Source of the DNA: Obrimoposthia wandeli
Lineage: Eukaryota
Direction: 5' to 3'
Assembly (NCBI GenBank): GCA_977020255.1
Contig: CDROCS010004529.1
Coordinates: forward strand, 124,001-188,000
DNA length: 64,000 bases
Shown here piece by piece: positions 36,437-45,957 of this stretch (position 1 is its first letter; each line of letters begins with the position of its first letter). The position numbers and the translations under genes are program-made. Under the pieces are notes generated by a model. That model did not search any database. It saw only the letters and a list, made by a program, of their open reading frames with translations, and was not told the origin of the DNA.

Positions 36437-36736
36437 TCAGTTCTCACATTTAGTCTTTCTAGGCCAGTATTTAAATTGTTGGCGAGCTGGAAGCTTACTA
36501 CAAAGCCAATCTTTATCGTGTTTAAATAGCCCTGAATAGCTAGCCCTTTCTTTTCTTTGAAGCGCACAGCGAGTCTTTGCTACTTGAGTTTTAATAGCTC
36601 GAATCAACCGAGCTCTATGAGATGAGCGTCTATCAATAAAACGTTTCTTTTTTCTAATTGCTAATAGTTCAGGATGTTGCGCTAAAATTTGTTCCACTGC
36701 TCCTTTAACCCTTTAATGCTCCTAAACCAACATCAC
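36437..36736 (-). pseudogene. C-terminal remnant of a TnsD/TniQ-family Tn7-like target-selection protein
   Basis: GAVEQILAQHPELLAIRK...ASYSGLFKHDKDWL..LP resembles the TnsD C-terminal VEQxI..P.L...RK / WLYxHDxxWL pattern; stops in the upstream frame; 5' side cut by IS1595. Confidence 0.7.
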
Positions 36737-37760
36737 GGCTATGTTTGGGAAGTTTGTTGAAACGCAGTGCATAACATATCCTTCATAAAGCTTGCTGACG
36801 ATATTTCGACCTGTTTGTTAAGCTCAAACCAACGAAACCACCCTATATATTTATGCAAATTTTTCGTTGCAACGCCATAAAAACGCTTCAACCATCGCTT
36901 TAATCTCATATGATATGCATTGACGGTTTGAATATGAAAAACTTTGTCTTTTACGCGTTCACCAAGGCTTTGATTTAATACCACGTGATTGATTTTTTCC
37001 TGTTTCGCTAGGTATTCATAATTGATATGACCATCTGTACAGAGGACAAGATCATCAGCCAGCTTAGGTAAAAAGTCAGCTTTCAGTTGAGACAGGGTAA
37101 AGCTAACGACAACCTGATCTACAACGTGCCCACTTCGATCGATACCAATCACAGCCTTTACCTTAGAAGCCTTGTCACTACCACGTTTACGCGGCTTTTC
37201 GGCGGTTAAATGACGACTGCCTTTTTCAGAATATTTGAACCATGTTTCATCTATTTCGACAATGCCTTCAAGCTGCTTACTCATGAGTAAATCAGCCAAT
37301 TTTAGAAATTTATGACGCCACACGAAAGCAGTAGTGAGATTAATTTCACACTCTTTTGCAGCGACGCGTAGTGTTTTTGAGTCCACCATCGTTTGGCAAT
37401 ATTGCTCCCACCGTTCAGGTTTATGTAGCCCACTCAATTGCGAACCAGTAAGCGCATTATAGGTTTTTGAACATGACTTACAACGATACCGTTGACGCCC
37501 TTTAGATGTGCCCCATTTATAGGAATAATTATGCTGGCAATAAGGGCATCCACTTAACGCTTTTTCAAGTAATTTAAGCACTTCAGGTTTGGATTCTGGA
37601 TTTAGCAAGTGCTTTTCTAAATCATTCTTCTGTCTAGGAGAGAGTTCACTAATCGTTTGTTTTAACTTGTTAAAATCAAATATTTTCATGATACGAAATC
37701 CTGTATATGCAATCATTACTGATATTATATACAGTTTCAACAATTCTCTCAAACATAGCC
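36737..37760 (-). mobile_element. IS1595-family insertion sequence (1024 bp)
   Basis: TIRs GGCTATGTTTGGGAAG / GGCTATGTTTGAGAGA; 8-bp flanks AACATCAC / AACATTAT (6/8). Confidence 0.9.
36739..37689 (-). CDS. IS1595-family DDE transposase with N-terminal Zn ribbon
   Basis: CPYC..CKSC, VEIDETW, LCTDG, FHIQTVNAYH; stop TAG inside the TIR; ATG at 37689 likely start. Confidence 0.92.
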   Translation of the reverse strand: MKIFDFNKLKQTISELSPRQKNDLEKHLLNPESKPEVLKLLEKALSGCPYCQHNYSYKWGTSKGRQRYRCKSCSKTYNALTGSQLSGLHKPERWEQYCQTMVDSKTLRVAAKECEINLTTAFVWRHKFLKLADLLMSKQLEGIVEIDETWFKYSEKGSRHLTAEKPRKRGSDKASKVKAVIGIDRSGHVVDQVVVSFTLSQLKADFLPKLADDLVLCTDGHINYEYLAKQEKINHVVLNQSLGERVKDKVFHIQTVNAYHMRLKRWLKRFYGVATKNLHKYIGWFRWFELNKQVEISSASFMKDMLCTAFQQTSQT

Positions 37761-37926
37761 AACATTATAGTATAGAAAATCTCTCGTTTTCACACGATTC
37801 AGGCTGTGAACGTTATCTCTAAAGATGAAATTTCTTCATTTATTCATACAGCCGATGATTTATCTATTAAAGGCTTAGCCTATAAACTGAATATGGGTTT
37901 GATTACATAAAGGTAGTAGTTTCAAA

Positions 37927-37955
37927 AAAAGCGAACCATCTCTGGTTCGCCTTTT
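37927..37955 (-). terminator. Terminator-like hairpin inside transposon end C
   Basis: AAAAGCGAACCA-TCTC-TGGTTCGCCTTTT. Confidence 0.75.
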
Positions 37956-37971
37956 GCTACTTACTTGAGGT

Positions 37972-38019
37972 GTTAACCATCTTCATTAAATCGTCAACCA
38001 ACTTAATTAAAGACCCTCA
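37972..38019. mobile_element. Tn7-like right end C (same family as element A)
   Basis: Sites GTTAACCATCTTCATTAAA and GTCAACCAACTTAATTAAA, then GACCCTCA. Confidence 0.75.
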
Positions 38020-38024
38020 ACAAA

Positions 38025-38054
38025 AAAGGGCGAATCATTGCTGACTCACCCTTT
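38025..38054 (-). terminator. Terminator-like hairpin inside transposon end B
   Basis: AAAGGGCGAATCA-TTGC-TGACTCACCCTTT (imperfect). Confidence 0.65.
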
Positions 38055-38105
38055 AAGCTATTTCATCAAAAGCTCATTACCTAAAAATGATTATGACCCT
38101 CTTGA

Positions 38106-38170
38106 GTCACAATCTTAATTACGGTCACAAACTTCATTAAAACAGTCACAATCTTTATTAACAATCACCA
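38106..38170. mobile_element. Tn7-like right end B (distinct binding-site variant)
   Basis: Three adjacent sites GTCACAA(T/A)CTT(A/C/T)ATTA at 38106, 38124 and 38145, then CAATCACCA, then ATGATT. Confidence 0.78.
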
Positions 38171-38299
38171 ATGATTTGAAGGTATTTAATTAAGTTGGTT
38201 AACATAAGACATTCATTTAATAATACGCTACCGTATTTATTAATGAAGATGGTTAACGCATTTAGGCTATTGAGCGCGTACTCTACCAAGTTTATAAAC

Positions 38300-38795
38300 G
38301 CTAAAAAACAACAAGTAAAAGGCAAATCAAGCGCTACCCCTTATCCAGCAACTCTATCGTATTAAAAAAGAAGCGAGCACTTTGTGGTTGATCAGCGCTA
38401 CGCAATAAGGCGAAACCAATCCAAAGAGATACTGAGTCAACTGCCCAAATAGCTCGATAAACCGATTGATAAAGCAGTACAGTATTTACAGAATTAACGG
38501 CTCCGATTAACGGACCCCGTTGAGGATGGAGGCTATTAGATTGATATTAATCGAGCCGAAAACTGTATACGTCCATTCGTGACTGATCGTAAAAACTAGA
38601 AGTTCAGTGCCAGTCAAAAAGGTGCTATAAGCACTGAGAGTTTATATAGTATCTTAGAAAATACAAAAGCCAACGGGTTAGAACCGTATCATTATCTAAG
38701 ACAACTGCTTACTCAATTACCTTTAGCTGAACGATTGAAGATATCGATACTTTACTGCCTTGAAATTTTAAGGGTGTAGTTGCTTAGCCGTTTAC
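38300..38795 (+). pseudogene. Decayed IS66 transposase (TnpC) C-terminus and right end
   Basis: Fragments IQQLYRI, IDINRAENCIRPF...RKN, ANGLEPYHYL...LLP with stops and frameshifts; ends in GCCGTTTAC. Confidence 0.8.
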
Positions 38796-38860
38796 CATCT
38801 AACTGTTAAAAAATTTAGGTACCCTTGTTTCAGCTTGGGTAATACCTCCGAACAAAACGG

Positions 38861-40066
38861 TCACCTGCAACACTTGAGTGCTTTCTCTACATTAATTCCA
38901 AAGGTGATGACGCCTATGTCACTATTTTTATGCGCTATAGAAAAACTAATTTGACTTTGATATACCCGAGTTGATTCGTCATATAAGATATCTCCTATAA
39001 AATACTTTTTTTTGCTAAAAGTGTTCAAATATTTAGGTTCATCGCCTTGGTATATATCAGTAGTTAATTTGCTTACCGCAACATTTAATCCAGTGCTATC
39101 CATAAGTATTATCTCAGAAACAATACCATCTGATTTAGCTTGAACTTTCTTCAGTAAAGCAGACAATTCTGAATGGAAGATAGCTCCGTATAAATCACCT
39201 TTTTTATCTAACACTTGCTTTCGCCATTTAGCTTCTAGTAGTAGTATATCTAGCGGATTATGTTCTATATTTTTTTTAATTAGTCTAGGTTTTGTGAGTG
39301 GATGTGCCTGTACAAAATTATTTAATGGTGTAATTATTTTTTTTAAATGTTCTTTTTCCGAAAGGCTTAAAGTTAGTGACCTAGGCTTACAATCGCTAAT
39401 CTTTTGATTGAATTTTTTTATGAAATTTGGTTTTTTATCAATATATTCATTGGATAAAACCATCACTTTAGGAACATATTTTATAAACTGTTTTTTTACC
39501 GTCGTGTCAGCATTAATCTGATCGTAACCTTCGTAATAAGATAATACAACTTCATCAACAATTAATGCTTCGATTCTTTTTAATTTAAACATTTGAATTA
39601 ACTGATCAAATGTACTGACCAAAGTTGTTATTTCAATATTGTTGTTAAGCATCCATTGATGAGCGGAACTTCCGTTAATTGCTGCGACCCTAGATTGCTT
39701 TTCCCCTTCATCACTAACCACCTTACTATCGCGTTTAAGCCAGTACCATTTCTCTAAAGAAATAGGTGCTGATTTTACACCGGATATCTCTTCATACAGA
39801 TCAATAGAAAAGAGACCGTCTAATCGATTCTGTGCGAACGTATTTCTAGCTCTTTTCTGGGGATAAATATCAATAGAATGAAGTGTATTTAATTTATTAA
39901 ATATGCACTTAACTGTCTGTACTGCTTCATTTGCAATTTTATTGTTAATAACTATGTAGTTGGACAAGTTGTAGGTAGCTAGTTTTGTTTGGCTATTTGC
40001 ACTTTCACAAAAAACGAGCCCCAGAATTAATAATTTGATGCGAAACTTCATAGGATTAATTTCCAA
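38861..40066 (-). CDS. Periplasmic protein: family-3 solute-binding domain fused to a PDC/Cache-like domain
   Basis: N-terminal half has YPQKRA...DGLFS, AAINGS, LKRIEALI; C-terminal half has SEIILMD.TGLNVA...DIYQGDE.KY...YDEST..YQSQIS...IGVITFGINVE; likely ATG near 40051. Confidence 0.65.
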   Translation of the reverse strand: MEINPMKFRIKLLILGLVFCESANSQTKLATYNLSNYIVINNKIANEAVQTVKCIFNKLNTLHSIDIYPQKRARNTFAQNRLDGLFSIDLYEEISGVKSAPISLEKWYWLKRDSKVVSDEGEKQSRVAAINGSSAHQWMLNNNIEITTLVSTFDQLIQMFKLKRIEALIVDEVVLSYYEGYDQINADTTVKKQFIKYVPKVMVLSNEYIDKKPNFIKKFNQKISDCKPRSLTLSLSEKEHLKKIITPLNNFVQAHPLTKPRLIKKNIEHNPLDILLLEAKWRKQVLDKKGDLYGAIFHSELSALLKKVQAKSDGIVSEIILMDSTGLNVAVSKLTTDIYQGDEPKYLNTFSKKKYFIGDILYDESTRVYQSQISFSIAHKNSDIGVITFGINVEKALKCCR

Positions 40067-40147
40067 GACAGGTTAATATTTAGCATTGATTTTATTGAAA
40101 TGTTTTTGGTAAAATTCAATTTTCCGAGTTATGTGAAATTTCAATAA

Positions 40148-41770
40148 CTAACTTACTTTGAATCGATTAACTTCACTACCAAGATCCTCAACCATAGTGG
40201 TAACGGTCGTTGAAACACTTAAATTCTTTTGCGACAAGTTGTGATTATCTTGGTTTTGACTATTCAAATGTGACAAATTATCACTAATATCTTTGGTTAC
40301 TTGAGATTGTTCTTCTGCCGCTGCTGCTATCTGAGTAGCCATATCATTGACTTTAGTTGCTGAGCTCTCAATATCACTTAATAATGATTGCGTACTTTTG
40401 ATCATCGATACTGAAGATACAACTTTGTCACTCGCTTCACTTACAGACTGAACAGCTAATTCAGCACCATTACGTAACCGCTCTATCATCTCATCAATTT
40501 CTTGAGTTGATTGTTGTGTTTTTGTTGCCAAATTCCTTACTTCATCAGCGACAACTGAAAACCCGCGACCGTGATCACCGGCTCTAGCCGCTTCTATCGC
40601 AGCATTAAGCGCTAACAAATTGGTTTGTTCAGCAATTCCTCTTATAACACCTAATACAGATTCTATATTTTTTGACTCTGTTGAAAAGAGTGAAACTGAA
40701 TCACCTACATTCTTCACCGTCTCCTCCAATATCATCATTTGGGATACTGAATTATCTATGATTTCCACTCCTTCTTTAGTGATTTTAACAGTACTATTGG
40801 TCTCCTTTGCAGTATCTTGCACGTTGCTAGTTACTTCAGTTGTTGAAATATTAAATTCTTGAACCGATGACGCGATTACAGCAAATGCTTCGCTTTGCTG
40901 TTCAGAAATTGATTGGCTTTGCAATGCAGATTCTTTTAACACTTGGGAGTTATCCGTTAACAAGATCGTTTTGCTTTGCACACTAGCAATAAGCTGCTCT
41001 AACTTCCCAATCAAGTTATCAAAAGAGTTTGCTAACAAGCCAAGCTCATCATTACGCGGTGAATGAATGCGTAATCTTAAATCTCCATCCCCTTCACTTA
41101 TTTCGTTAATTCTATCAGTAAGCTGAGTAATGCTGTTAACCAGTAGTTTAGGCATAAAATAAGTAAGCACTAGAGATATAGTGATCACTAAAGCCAAAAA
41201 AATAGCCGCTCCTAAAATAAACCTATCGGACTTTCTTTTTAAAGTAATCGCAGTCAAAGCTGACTGTTTTGACAATTCCTCACCTGCTAGATTATATAGA
41301 TCTCTCAAGCTATTAAACGTTTCTAAGCTGGTACCTGAACTCAATTTCATCGCCGTTTCTCTTTCCCCACTTTGCACTAAGGAAAAAACTTTCGAAGATT
41401 GAAGTTTCCATTGATCAAATGATGCTTCAAATCCAGTCAACTGTTTATTGATATACGTATATTTAGACATCAATTCTTGATAGCTCTGCATCCTATCAAA
41501 TGCCTGCTGCGCGTTCTCTTCATAGTCTGCAAATGCTTTATCTGCCTCTCCACCTAACAGAATCGACTGTTCAGCTACCCGTGCCTGATACAAGTCTCTA
41601 TCAGCATTCAAAATTGATGAGCTTGCCACCAAATATTTCTCACCAAAAACACTGATTCCCTCTTGTAGTTGGTTGACTATATAATTTCCTACTATGGCAG
41701 TAGTTATGAGAGAAATAACTAGCAGTACCATCCCTGCTGATAGTTTTAATCTAATACTTCCTGAAAACAT
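40148..41770 (-). CDS. Methyl-accepting chemotaxis protein (four-helix-bundle sensor, HAMP)
   Basis: Two TM helices, GDGDL...NDELG, IAEQTNLLALNAAIEAARAG..GRGFSVVADEVR.LA. Confidence 0.95.
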   Translation of the reverse strand: MFSGSIRLKLSAGMVLLVISLITTAIVGNYIVNQLQEGISVFGEKYLVASSSILNADRDLYQARVAEQSILLGGEADKAFADYEENAQQAFDRMQSYQELMSKYTYINKQLTGFEASFDQWKLQSSKVFSLVQSGERETAMKLSSGTSLETFNSLRDLYNLAGEELSKQSALTAITLKRKSDRFILGAAIFLALVITISLVLTYFMPKLLVNSITQLTDRINEISEGDGDLRLRIHSPRNDELGLLANSFDNLIGKLEQLIASVQSKTILLTDNSQVLKESALQSQSISEQQSEAFAVIASSVQEFNISTTEVTSNVQDTAKETNSTVKITKEGVEIIDNSVSQMMILEETVKNVGDSVSLFSTESKNIESVLGVIRGIAEQTNLLALNAAIEAARAGDHGRGFSVVADEVRNLATKTQQSTQEIDEMIERLRNGAELAVQSVSEASDKVVSSVSMIKSTQSLLSDIESSATKVNDMATQIAAAAEEQSQVTKDISDNLSHLNSQNQDNHNLSQKNLSVSTTVTTMVEDLGSEVNRFKVS

Positions 41771-42289
41771 ATTTTCACCTCATAGTTAAAGATATATTGC
41801 TAAAATCTTAGTCTTTTAACCATAGCTCTGTAACACGACAATAACAAACACTAATATAGTTGTTTTGTATATAGTTTAAATTTCTATTTAAAATCAAACA
41901 TGCTCCAGTTCAAATAATCACTGTATTTAGCAGATACTTTCTTTTTAATATGTGAAAAGTAAACAGTATGGGATTAAAGGATTAATCTTATTTTTTTTGT
42001 CAAAAATTTAGTTTTAATTTCTAATGCTTACATTCTAGATAATCTACAAAACCTTTATTGTGATGAAAGTAGTTGTCATCGATAATAAGTGTTTTGCAGC
42101 ATTGATGATGTATTTCCTTGCGCTGATCGATCCCCCACAATCCTAGCTTTTATATATTTGGTTTGATGTGGCTTAAAGCCACATTGAATTTAGAAGTCTT
42201 TTTACTACAAAGCAAGTGCCCCTTCTGTCAGGGCTGATAATTGGGCTCCCCATCCCCAGGAAGAGACCCTAGATGGCCGGTTAACCGCT

Positions 42290-42697
42290 TCACTGAGTCG
42301 ACCGAGTGTGAGTAATGATAACCCTTATTCTGAAGCACTTTTTAGGACGCTAAAATACCGTCCAGACTGGCCTAGCAAAGGCTTTAAAAACTTGGTGGAA
42401 ACTCGTGAATGGGTAGATAAATTTGTTACTTGGTATAACGAGGAACATAAGCATAGTAAGCTAAATTTTGTGTCTCCAAGCGAGCGGCATAGAATGCAAG
42501 ATGGAGGTGTTTTATCTCATCGCAAAGCAGTAATTGAAGCTGCACAAGAGAAAAACCCAATACGTTGGCCTAACGGAATAAGAAATTGTGACCCAATCGG
42601 TGCCGTAATGCTGAACCCAGATAAAGAACCCGATCAAATGACACGAGTGACAGCGTAAAATTTAAGAAAAGAGTGCCAACTACCTTGAAAAACAACG
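42290..42697 (+). pseudogene. IS3-family transposase C-terminal fragment with right-end sequence
   Basis: SRPSVSNDNPYSEALFRTLKY...WYNEEHKHSKL..VSP; no N-terminus; end-like sequence CCAACTACCTTGAAAAAC. Confidence 0.82.
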
Positions 42698-42919
42698 GAT
42701 GATCCCGTTCAATCAATGGATAGCATCAATGTACTTGGCGTTATAGACTTACTAAGAAGCTTAAATGTAAATTTAGGAAAGCAAATAATTATTTCGACAC
42801 ATGATGATAATTTTCATGCTTTACTAAAGCAGAAGTTACCAGAGCATTTATTTAAATCAAAATTTTTAGAGCTTGAATCGTTCGGTAAAGTAGCGGTGCA
42901 CGCAAGGCACAATAAATAG
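42698..42919 (+). pseudogene. C-terminal remnant of an SbcC/SMC-like ABC ATPase
   Basis: Begins at the Walker B / D-loop DDPVQSMD directly after the IS3 end; has the QIIISTHD H-loop. Confidence 0.78.
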
Positions 42920-42955
42920 ACAATATGATAATCGTTGTTTGGCGATTAGCATGAC

Positions 42956-42987
42956 AAAAGGCGAATCATTTCTGATTCGCCTTTTTT
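42956..42987. terminator. Bidirectional terminator inside the element A right end, also positioned to terminate gcvP
   Basis: AAAAGGCGAATCA-TTTC-TGATTCGCCTTTTTT. Confidence 0.8.
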
Positions 42988-43071
42988 TATTTCTGTGGGC
43001 TGTTAACCAACTTCATTAAATTAACCATCTTAATTAAAACGTTAACCAACTTAATTAAATACCCTCAATGA

Positions 43072-45957
43072 TTAAGCATCTTCTCTATAGCTATCAATAC
43101 TAGGACAGCTACAAATAAAGTTACGATCACCAAAGACGTTATCTACACGGTTAGCTGCTGGCCAAAACTTAGAAGCTTTAGTGGCGGCTGTTGGGAAGAA
43201 TGCTTCTTCACACGTGTATGGATGGCTCCAGTTAGAAACCATATTCTTTTGCGTATGAGGTGCGTTAACTAATGGATTATCATCCACTGGCCATTCGCCT
43301 GACTCAACTTTGGCGATTTCAGCGCGGATCTTAACCATCGCTTCAACTAAACGATCAATCTCTGCTTGAGATTCAGATTCAGTCGGCTCAATCATCAATG
43401 TACCCGCAACTGGGAATGACATCGTAGGTGCGTGCAATCCGTAATCCATTAAGCGCTTAGCGATATCTTCTTCTGAAATCCCTGACACTTCTTTCAATGG
43501 GCGAATATCAACGATACATTCGTGTGCTACTTTATCATTGCGACCACGATAAAGAATTGGGTAATGTACCGCCAATTTCTCAGTCATGTAATTCGCGCCA
43601 AGAATGGCATTTTGTGTAGAGTGCTTAAGGCCGTCTTTGCCTAATGTGCGGATGTACATCCACGTGATAGGTAAAATGCTTGCTGAACCAAAAGGCGTTG
43701 CTGCAACAGCACCGTTAGTCGCGCTAACGGCACCACCTTGAATAACTTTATGTCCAGGAAGGTACGGTGCCAAATGGCTCTTAACACCGATAGGGCCAAC
43801 ACCTGGTCCACCGCCGCCATGCGGGATAGCAAAGGTCTTGTGTAAGTTAAGGTGTGATACGTCTGATCCGATAGCACCCGGCTTAGAGATACCGACTTGC
43901 GCGTTCATGTTCGCACCGTCCATGTAAACCTGACCACCACATTCGTGAATTACTTCACAAATCTCAACGATTTCTTCTTCGTAGATACCGTGTGTTGATG
44001 GGTACGTGATCATGATGCAAGATAGGTTATCAGCATGTTCTTTAGCTTTCGCTTTCAGATCATTAACATCAACGTTACCTTTGTCATCACATTCAACGAT
44101 AACAACTTTAAGACTCATCATTGCAGCAGATGCTGGGTTAGTACCGTGTGCTGATGATGGAATCAAGCAAACATCACGATGACCTTGGCCATTCGCTTCT
44201 TGGTATTTGCGAATAGCAAGTAGACCAGCGTATTCACCTTGTGCACCAGAGTTTGGCTGCAGTGATACGTTATCGTAACCGGTAATTTCTACTAGCATCG
44301 CTTCCAGTTGAGTAATCATTGTCTGATAACCAACGGTTTGATCTAGTGGAGCATAGGGATGCACATTACTAAATTCGTTCCAAGTCACAGGAATCATTTG
44401 TGACGTAGAGTTTAGCTTCATAGTACAAGATCCTAGTGGGATCATGCCGTGAGCTAATGAGTAATCTTTGTTCTCTAAACGCTTAAGGTAGCGCAGCATT
44501 TCAGTCTCTGACTGGTAGCTGTTGAACGTTGGATGCGTAAGTACTGCATCGGTACGGCGCATATCATCGCTGATACCCGTTGCAGCACCAGCAACAATCG
44601 CTGCATCTAATGCGTCAGTGTCTAAACCGTGTCCTGCACCTAAGATAATGTCAAACAATTGAGCAACATCAGTCGCTTGAGTGGTTTCATCAAGGGAGAT
44701 ACCGTATTGACCGTTACCTGCTTGACGAAAGTTACAACCAGCATCTAAAGCGCGCTGATAAAGAGCATCATCGCCAGAGATAGTGATGGTATCAAAGTAA
44801 GTGTCACTAACCGCGACGCCTTTGCTGCCTAGACCATTCGCAAGAATAGCCGTTAAGCGATGCGTGCGTTCAGCAATACGCTTTAAGCCAGCAGGGCCGT
44901 GGAAAACAGCATAGAAGCTAGCCATGTTGGCAAGTAGCGCTTGTGCTGTACAAATGTTTGAAGTGGCTTTTTCACGTCTGATATGTTGCTCACGCGTTTG
45001 CATGGCCATACGTAGCGCTGGGTTACCTTCTGAATCAACAGAAACACCGATAATTCTACCAGGTACTTGACGCTTAAGTTTTTCACTTGCTGCAAAGAAT
45101 GCTGCATGTGGACCACCGAAACCCATAGGTACGCCAAAACGCTGTGAAGTACCTAGTACAACATCAGCACCTAGCTCGCCAGGTGATTTAAGTAGCATAA
45201 GTGCTAATAAATCAGATGCAACAGCAACCATCGCTTTTTGTGCTTTTGCCGCCGCAATGTGTGTGGCTAAATCCGTTACGCTACCGTTCGTTGAAGGGTA
45301 TTGTAGCTGTGCACCAAACACATCGTAATCGCCTAGCTTATCAGCGCTATCAACAACGACATCGTAGCCGAAGTATTCTGCACGTGTTTTGATAACATCT
45401 AGTGTCTGTGGGTGAACATCCGTTGAAACAAAATAAGTGTTGGTTTTTTTGCGATTGGCGCGCTTACATAAAGTCATTGCTTCAGCTGCAGCGGTGGCTT
45501 CATCTAGTAAAGAAGCATTGGCCAATGGCATACCCGTGATATCCATTACCATTTGTTGGTAATTTAATAACGCTTCAAGACGTCCCTGGGCAATTTCAGG
45601 CTGATAAGGCGTGTAAGCTGTGTACCAACCTGGGTTTTCCATGACGTTGCGTAAAATGACAAATGGAACTTTAGTATTGTGATAACCCATACCAATATAA
45701 GATTTGTTCACCTTATTTTGGTCAGCCAGCGCACGTAATTCTGCTAGTGCATCTGTCTCACTAATGCCTTTATCCATGTTTAGCGCATCGTCTAAGCGGA
45801 TAGAGTCAGGTACCGTTTTTTCGATAAGCTGATCGAGTGAATCAAAACCTAAGCTAGATAGCATGTTTTGCTGTTCGCTAGCACTAGGACCAACGTGGCG
45901 TTGGGTAAACTCTGAATGGTTTTCTAAATCATTCAAGGTAGACGTTTCATTTGTCAT
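43072..45957 (-). CDS. gcvP: Glycine dehydrogenase (decarboxylating), P protein
   Basis: [44 protein letters not shown]. Confidence 0.98.

Follow-up and report, generated by a model that had tools for sequence, protein, structure and literature searches.

The 3' end of gcvP as a probable attachment site for a family of Tn7-like transposons

Tn7-like transposons of one family very probably use the 3' end of gcvP, the gene of the glycine dehydrogenase P protein, as their attachment site in the chromosome. This reading is based on a 64,000-nucleotide stretch from an assembly of Obrimoposthia wandeli (GCA_977020255.1, contig CDROCS010004529.1, positions 124,001 to 188,000 of the forward strand), here called the window, and on relatives whose loci are given L numbers. 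Downstream of gcvP, the window most likely holds a pile-up of three such elements with the newest one beside the gene. The more specific reading is favoured with moderate confidence. It takes gcvP as a previously undescribed attachment (att) site with its own clade of TnsD-type selectors in marine Gammaproteobacteria, which would read the codons for GDRN(F/L)(I/M)CSCP and direct insertion about 34 nt downstream, and it includes a fixed right-end terminator and a defence slot as properties of the family.

The host gene and the newest element, termed A, are composed of the following features, with the strand given where there is one:

43072-45957, minus strand: gcvP, the host gene, encoding the P protein of 961 amino acids (aa) (Pfam GDC-P, E-value 2.9e-193; GcvP2_C, E-value 2.4e-57)
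43102-43149, minus strand: candidate recognition region within the gcvP codons, ending 34 nt before the terminus of A, based on conservation across gcvP 3' ends
43068-43073: ATGATT, the gcvP-side direct repeat of A, read from the sequence
42956-43067, minus strand: right end of A, with the 8-bp terminus TGAGGGTA (read inward), three contiguous 19-bp sites (43041, 43020, 43002) and a terminator hairpin
38177-43067, minus strand: element A, a complete non-autonomous Tn7-like element of 4,891 bp with its right end towards gcvP, based on its termini and on insertion polymorphism
38177-38257, plus strand: left end of A, with the terminus TGAAGGTA and two spaced sites (38185-38203, 38239-38257)
38171-38176: ATGATT, the other direct repeat of A, separating its left end from the terminus of an older right-end stub, B, read from the sequence

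The gcvP stop codon reads TTA on the plus strand (43072-43074), and A starts 4 nt past it. Both copies of ATGATT are present where the original prediction had placed them, one on either side of A and the second overlapping the stop codon: positions 38162-38184 read ...CAATCACCA ATGATT TGAAGGTA..., and positions 43060-43077 read ...TACCCTCA ATGATT AAGC. A third ATGATT (38087-38092) belongs to the ordinary interior of stub B, and L098 has AATCGT at this place. The termini of A form a 28-nt inverted repeat that is 96% complementary. The 19-bp motif GTTAACCAACTTAATTAAA, with at most three mismatches, has seven matches in the 64 kb compared to 0.09 expected from shuffles. These lie at 38185 and 38239 (minus strand), at 43002, 43020 and 43041 (plus strand) and, in an older right end described below, at 37972 and 37993 (plus strand). 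The predicted asymmetry of A, with spaced sites on the left and contiguous sites on the right, was thus recovered. The combination of TG..CA termini, spaced left and contiguous right TnsB-type sites recurs in L093, L104 and L109. The hairpin at 42956-42985 in the right end of A has a 13-pair stem followed by a T run.

No genes for TnsA, TnsB, TnsC or a TniQ-family selector were found in A by Pfam and tblastn searches, and A is therefore regarded as a non-autonomous derivative. Pfam also revealed no full-length tns gene between positions 25 kb and 50 kb in the window. The minus-strand open reading frames (ORFs) at 25-32 kb, which had been considered as tns genes, were rejected because their Pfam matches are to an ABC transporter, a DAO oxidoreductase and a phosphatase.

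The position of the elements relative to gcvP was compared across ten junctions, which represent four end types and hosts from three families. In all ten, the right end points towards gcvP, and 33-36 nt separate the transposon terminus from the last base of the Pro codon in CSCP. Between stop codon and terminus, the same junctions have anything from 4 to 12 nt, because the C-terminal tails of GcvP differ in length. The five bases beside the terminus are different at each junction. In an alignment of 11 gcvP 3' ends from Oceanospirillaceae, Alteromonas and Colwellia, the block encoding R(V/I)D(N/D)V(F/Y)GDRN(F/L)(I/M)CSCP is nearly invariant except at wobble positions. A constant offset from CSCP is what recognition of the coding sequence by a TnsD-type protein would predict, and it supports the original proposal that a TnsD-family protein targets the gcvP 3' end; the block at 43102-43149 would then be the TnsD binding site. 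L111 and L112 contain a full tns element 34 nt after the CSCL codons of a gcvP 3' fragment of about 75 nt. This fragment (..IDVYGDSNLICSCLPVD..; L111:407-545, L112:382-520) lies downstream of an unrelated ORF in a different context. It could be either a natural minimal attachment site or a piece of gcvP that was carried over, and a 3' stretch of roughly this length may be sufficient for targeting.

By analogy with Tn7 at glmS, the TnsD-like protein would bind the conserved sequence coding for GDRN(F/L)(I/M)CSCP and recruit TnsC and the TnsAB transposase. Insertion would then occur in one orientation, with the right end towards gcvP, about 34 nt downstream and just past the stop codon, and gcvP would therefore stay intact. 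With intact ends and no transposition genes, A would be mobile only with proteins supplied from elsewhere. These were probably provided in trans by an autonomous element whose ends are A-type. In the source sample, there are further A-type ends with other interiors.

The site is found in several states among relatives. The closest GcvP proteins are 88-92% identical and come from Oceanospirillaceae; gcvH, glyA and sdaA lie upstream of gcvP in the window, and the same order is seen in relatives. If A arrived by transposition, uninterrupted relatives should lack its repeats, as the original prediction had pointed out, and such relatives were found. L090 and L091 have no TnsB-type sites between the gcvP stop codon and the terminator. 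In L098, gcvP is directly followed by the same stub B without A, in an allele that otherwise matches that of the window, which indicates a discrete insertion of A into an L098-like allele. L093 contains a complete non-autonomous element of 4,220 bp with a further end type, D, and a clean 5-bp duplication (AGTCG); the terminator is positioned after the left end of the element. L103 has an A-type right end at gcvP; the TetR of the window and that of L103 are not orthologous.

A 78-bp right-end stub occurs in two versions. One has B-type sites throughout (L098:4014-4090), and the second differs in its terminus and begins with an A-type site (L095:12890-12960, likewise in L096, L100 and L101). The contigs with the two versions encode identical GcvP proteins. 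The right end in L095, L096, L100 and L101 is chimeric, with an A-type first site followed by B-type second and third sites, which suggests that stacked elements have recombined at their right ends. Alignments of A-type with B-type right ends reach 74-77%.

A metagenome scan for the A-type terminus returned nine loci, and the enrichment at gcvP expected for a dedicated site was observed. Four loci abut gcvP (L083, L085, L088 and L089), where 11-12 nt lie between the stop codon and the right end and gcvP has a nucleotide identity of about 80%. One is an A-type left end abutting a different right end in a stack as in the window (L081), and the remaining four represent one other locus from four samples (L082, L084, L086 and L087). 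A genome scan with the gcvP C-terminus gave, among the matches listed, only sequences of at most 75% identity, none with the end motif, and the A-type terminus had no matches in viral contigs.

A history without any site-specific targeting would explain the shared position by ancestry alone, that is, by one ancient insertion beside gcvP followed by vertical inheritance and recombination. Chimeric right ends such as that of L095 would be compatible with it, as would the resemblance of the terminator behind several right ends to that of the empty site and the variability of the DNA downstream of gcvP in every relative. This explanation is nevertheless very improbable, given that the flanking pentamers differ between junctions with two verified duplications (AGTCG and GAGAT), that alleles with and without an element exist (L098 and the window, L090 and L093), that the site is occupied in Alteromonas, Colwellia and Oceanospirillaceae, and that stub B is 90% identical between genomes whose gcvP is only 78% identical.

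Elements of this end family that encode tns genes, which had been expected to exist at gcvP, were identified in four genomes from three families. The gene set tnsA-tnsB-tnsC-tniQ-tnsD stands behind a B-type right end in L092/L094, L105, L106 and Alteromonas oceani (L107 and L104). The Alteromonas oceani element is complete, with a length of 21,103 bp, a right end 6 nt after gcvP and GAGAT on both sides. Past its left end (L104:21106-21280), a remnant of a B-type right end is followed by D-type sites and a terminator like that of L093; the gcvP site of this genome, too, has been used at least three times. In L092/L094, from a metagenome-assembled genome (MAG) of Oceanospirillaceae, the B-type right end is followed by a Ppl-like defence gene, a 133-aa ORF, tnsA, tnsB, tnsC, tniQ and the TnsD-like gene, all directed away from gcvP. 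The metagenome contig L105 has gcvP, the right end, PDC-S19 and SIR2 genes and the full tns set, and the Colwellia MAG L106 has the end of gcvP, the right end, SIR2 and HerA genes and the tns set. The element beside the gcvP fragment in L111 and L112 is of the same type. In Paraglaciecola hydrolytica (L109), the contig begins at tnsA, so that the insertion site lies outside it, and the left end has three spaced sites.

The proteins of these elements are those of a Tn7-like system. TnsA matches PF08722 and TniQ, with 316 aa, matches PF06527. The TnsD-like protein, with 475-481 aa, matches PF15978 (E-value 1.1e-25) in addition to PF06527, and its N-terminus matches Tn7 TnsD (8glu, E-value 1e-14). 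TnsB matches Tn7 TnsB (7pik, E-value 1.7e-37) over the core only and has no Pfam match at an E-value of at most 0.01. A small conserved ORF of 113-133 aa always precedes tnsA, and an ORF of 59-62 aa follows tnsD in four of five element types. Homologs of the TnsD-like protein of L092/L094 are about 50% identical, and five further contexts of these were examined; a wider search gave 117 representatives with an E-value of 1e-30 or better, and beyond the close clade, there are about 50 representatives at 28-35% identity. Among PLSDB plasmids, the TnsB query found matches of about 31% identity or less at best, with no sign of the gcvP family.

The presence of two TniQ-family proteins raises the question of which one selects the target. 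The short TniQ, alone or together with the TnsD-like protein or an accessory factor, could select gcvP while the TnsD-like protein serves another pathway. Both proteins are encoded side by side in all autonomous relatives, small ORFs accompany the tns genes as described above, and Tn6022 needs an extra protein besides TniQ. This assignment is unlikely, however, as the C-terminal DNA-binding region of TnsD (PF15978 and helix-turn-helix matches) is found only in the long protein, and where parE-targeting elements have two TniQ proteins, it is the long one, of about 486 aa, that selects the att site (PMC11014353).

A conserved block at a distance from the insertion point is also compatible with insertion directed by Cascade, and a dedicated guide RNA with a match to the 3' coding sequence of gcvP would then be expected. 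There is hardly any probability left for such RNA-guided (CRISPR-associated) targeting. A TnsD-type protein is present in every autonomous case, and none of the called genes has a Cas-family Pfam annotation, either in the complete Alteromonas oceani element of 21.1 kb or in the 7.6-10 kb downstream of tnsD in L094, L105, L106 and L111 (about 10 kb in three of the four). Because the geometry is Tn7-like and the autonomous relatives have no Cas-annotated genes, protein-guided targeting is the best reading.

Beyond A, the window contains the remains of older elements:

38020-38170, minus strand: stub B, a 151-bp right end of an older element, with the terminus TGGTGATTG, three sites, a spacer and a degenerate terminator (38025-38054)
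37917-38019, minus strand: right end C, with the terminus TGAGGGTC, two sites (37993, 37972) and a terminator (37926-37955); A-type without the third site
36722-37775, minus strand: IS1595-family insertion sequence (IS) interrupting element C, with a transposase at 36739-37752 (Pfam DDE_Tnp_IS1595, E-value 5e-13) and 42-nt inverted repeats
36473-36703, minus strand: tnsD-like remnant of the last 77 codons, in the direction of gcvP, starting beside the end of the IS1595 copy (tblastn, E-value 4.6e-15)

Read away from gcvP, the order is 4 nt, A from right to left end, AATCAT, stub B, right end C, a gene remnant of 34 codons, the IS1595 copy and the tnsD remnant. The tandem stack that had been predicted therefore stands with regard to A, which is complete and stacked, and has to be revised with regard to B, of which only the 151-bp right-end stub is present; the third right end, C, and the tnsD remnant are additions. 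The sites of stub B, at 38106, 38124 and 38145 (spanning 38106-38160), are of a second type, GTCACAAnCTTnATTA, which is the type of the right ends of the autonomous elements. Stub B (38020-38160) is 90% identical over 141 bp to the gcvP-adjacent DNA of L095 and L100, while the gcvP coding sequence itself is 78% identical. Because of this difference, the stub is considered younger than the divergence of the hosts, and horizontal spread between genomes is suggested.

Homology of the window to L095 stops exactly at the terminus of C. It looks as if C had been inserted into B, although the window does not contain the remainder of B. C was presumably autonomous at one time, since a tnsD remnant lies behind its right end. 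In a BLASTP comparison with the TnsD-like protein of Alteromonas oceani, the remnant shows 48% identity to residues 398-474 (E-value 1e-19). The rest of the tnsA-tnsD region of C is gone, and the IS1595 copy now adjoins the tnsD remnant. The proteins that move A were probably similar to those of the autonomous relatives, judging from the homology of the ends (74-77%) and the tnsD remnant.

Several observations weigh against gcvP as the attachment site of the family. Instead of 5 bp, A is flanked by a 6-bp repeat (ATGATT) if its termini are taken as TG..CA, or by a 4-bp repeat if they are taken as TTG..CAA; a one-base slip in the A run beside the left terminus could be the source of the 6-bp repeat. 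Right end C lies 151 bp further from gcvP, right after the terminator of B and off the canonical point. Not every insertion of the family is at this point either, as a C-type end is found at the one non-gcvP locus of L082, L084, L086 and L087. There, the right end and its terminator (e.g. L087:9461-9560) are 94% identical to positions 37923-38022 of the window, in right end C, and lie about 240 bp upstream of a DctP-family gene; ADH, LysR and LysE genes follow. This locus may stem from a second targeting pathway or from a rearrangement. The left ends of B and C were not found in the whole window with relaxed motif searches, and a search over 19 kb did not reveal that of the L092/L094 element. 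In addition, no intact autonomous element was identified whose ends are A-type; those of the autonomous relatives are B-type. Finally, an empty allele was not seen in the source sample, where no contig skips A, although contigs drop rare variants.

The gcvP family shares most of its organization with Tn7. In Tn7, TnsD binds attTn7 at +23 to +58 inside glmS, and insertion occurs about 25 bp downstream (PMC2918618). Like Tn7 at glmS, the gcvP family has a heteromeric TnsA and TnsB transposase, TnsC and a TniQ/TnsD selector, TG..CA termini with spaced left and contiguous right sites, a right end towards the host gene and tns genes that read inward from the right end. Further common properties are an insertion point immediately behind the stop codon, with a fixed spacing from a conserved block of coding sequence, and, in the complete relatives, the 5-bp duplication. 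In contrast to Tn7, the family targets gcvP instead of glmS, has two TniQ-family proteins and no TnsE, and has a cargo slot between the right end and tnsA as well as a terminator built into the right end. The parE-targeting elements (Tn7017 / Acinetobacter) likewise encode a long and a short TniQ-family protein, and the long one, of about 480 aa, is presumed to select the 3' end of a housekeeping gene (PMC11014353, PMC11406308). They differ in their att gene, and a CRISPR-Cas module is absent from the gcvP family.

Serial insertion with the newest element nearest to the gene and decay to ends and cargo resemble the decayed stacks at glmS, nrdB, ffs and guaC. For A. baumannii, less than half of the insertions at glmS are predicted to function (PMC11014353). 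Unlike in those stacks, the gcvP site is used across genera by at least three or four types of end (A/C, B, D and chimeras). The att sites named in reviews and surveys are glmS, yhiN, comM, parE, nrdB, tRNA genes, guaC, yciA, rsmJ, ffs, plasmid res sites and CRISPR repeats. Of these, guaC, yciA, rsmJ and ffs are att sites of CRISPR-associated transposons (CASTs). The suspicion that gcvP had gone unrecognised agrees with the literature: no paper linking gcvP to a Tn7-like element was found in the searchable literature, including the supplements of Benler 2021 and Faure 2023 and excluding subscription-only papers. A gcvP 'island' in Pseudomonas aeruginosa was dismissed as unrelated, being an IS6100-flanked island inside the gene. 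The family is new by its att site, and the kind of element is already well understood. As the mechanism is the one expected from Tn7, the surprise to a specialist is moderate.

Tn7-like att sites are natural 'safe harbours' that come with a paired finder protein, and only a handful have been described. The gcvP site and the complete 21-kb element in the cultured Alteromonas oceani provide a directly testable pair of selector and target. The family accounts for the variable island downstream of gcvP in Oceanospirillaceae, Alteromonas and Colwellia, and with its stacked end types, chimeric right ends and IS-linked loss of tns genes, it illustrates how islands of this kind build up and break down. 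Defence systems (Ppl, SIR2-HerA, Gabija and others) are also seen to travel with the family, always in the same slot. The slot, variable in content, is bounded by the right end and by the small ORF that precedes tnsA and usually contains defence genes, for example:

L094:2516-5302: Ppl (E-value 4.9e-122)
L105:1684-3800: PDC-S19 and SIR2
L106:333-3230: SIR2 and HerA
L088:834-4537: GajA and GajB (Gabija)
L107:4001-6982: helicase with DEAD/ResIII and SWI2_SNF2 Pfam domains

In prototypic Tn7, tnsA lies directly behind the right end. A terminator follows the three right-end sites in all of the 11 right ends compared, with differing sequences. After displacement of the native terminator, it would serve to end transcription of gcvP and also of the convergent cargo gene. 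The idea that right ends are solo scars in front of the native gcvP terminator was rejected as a general reading because the Alteromonas and Colwellia elements have a different terminator at this place; it is also contradicted by the C-type end with its terminator at the non-gcvP locus. The empty-site terminator of L090 and L093 resembles the terminator inside Oceanospirillaceae right ends. Either the elements captured the native terminator, or the 'empty' sites are themselves old remnants.

The interior of A consists of cargo and gene remnants:

42716-42919, plus strand: 67-aa C-terminal remnant of an AAA/SMC-type ATPase gene beside the right end (weak match to Pfam AAA_13, E-value 0.032)
42308-42658, plus strand: remnant of an IS3-type transposase, C-terminal part of the integrase core (Pfam rve_3, E-value 5.2e-9)
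40148-41770, minus strand: methyl-accepting chemotaxis protein of 540 aa, cargo (Pfam MCPsignal, E-value 9.7e-44; HAMP; 4HB_MCP_1)
38861-40066, minus strand: 401-aa ORF beside the chemotaxis receptor, cargo, without a family match
38600-38776, plus strand: C-terminal remnant of an IS66-family transposase, a pseudogene piece (Pfam DDE_Tnp_IS66_C, PF13817, E-value 8.2e-8)

The ATPase remnant has no significant similarity to the Ppl-like gene of L094, and the 401-aa ORF has no match in Pfam or PADLOC. The frames around the IS66 remnant are interrupted by stop codons. The contig on which the window lies appears to be that of a member of the Oceanospirillaceae inside the assembly of a eukaryote, either as a symbiont or as a contaminant. 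Contigs of the source sample over 38000-43200 show two haplotypes across the cargo genes, and their depth over the IS3 remnant is above that of its surroundings. Several of these contigs enter other sequence after an A-type end or terminator, with loose ends at positions 38192 and 38204 and, for four contigs, at 42956.

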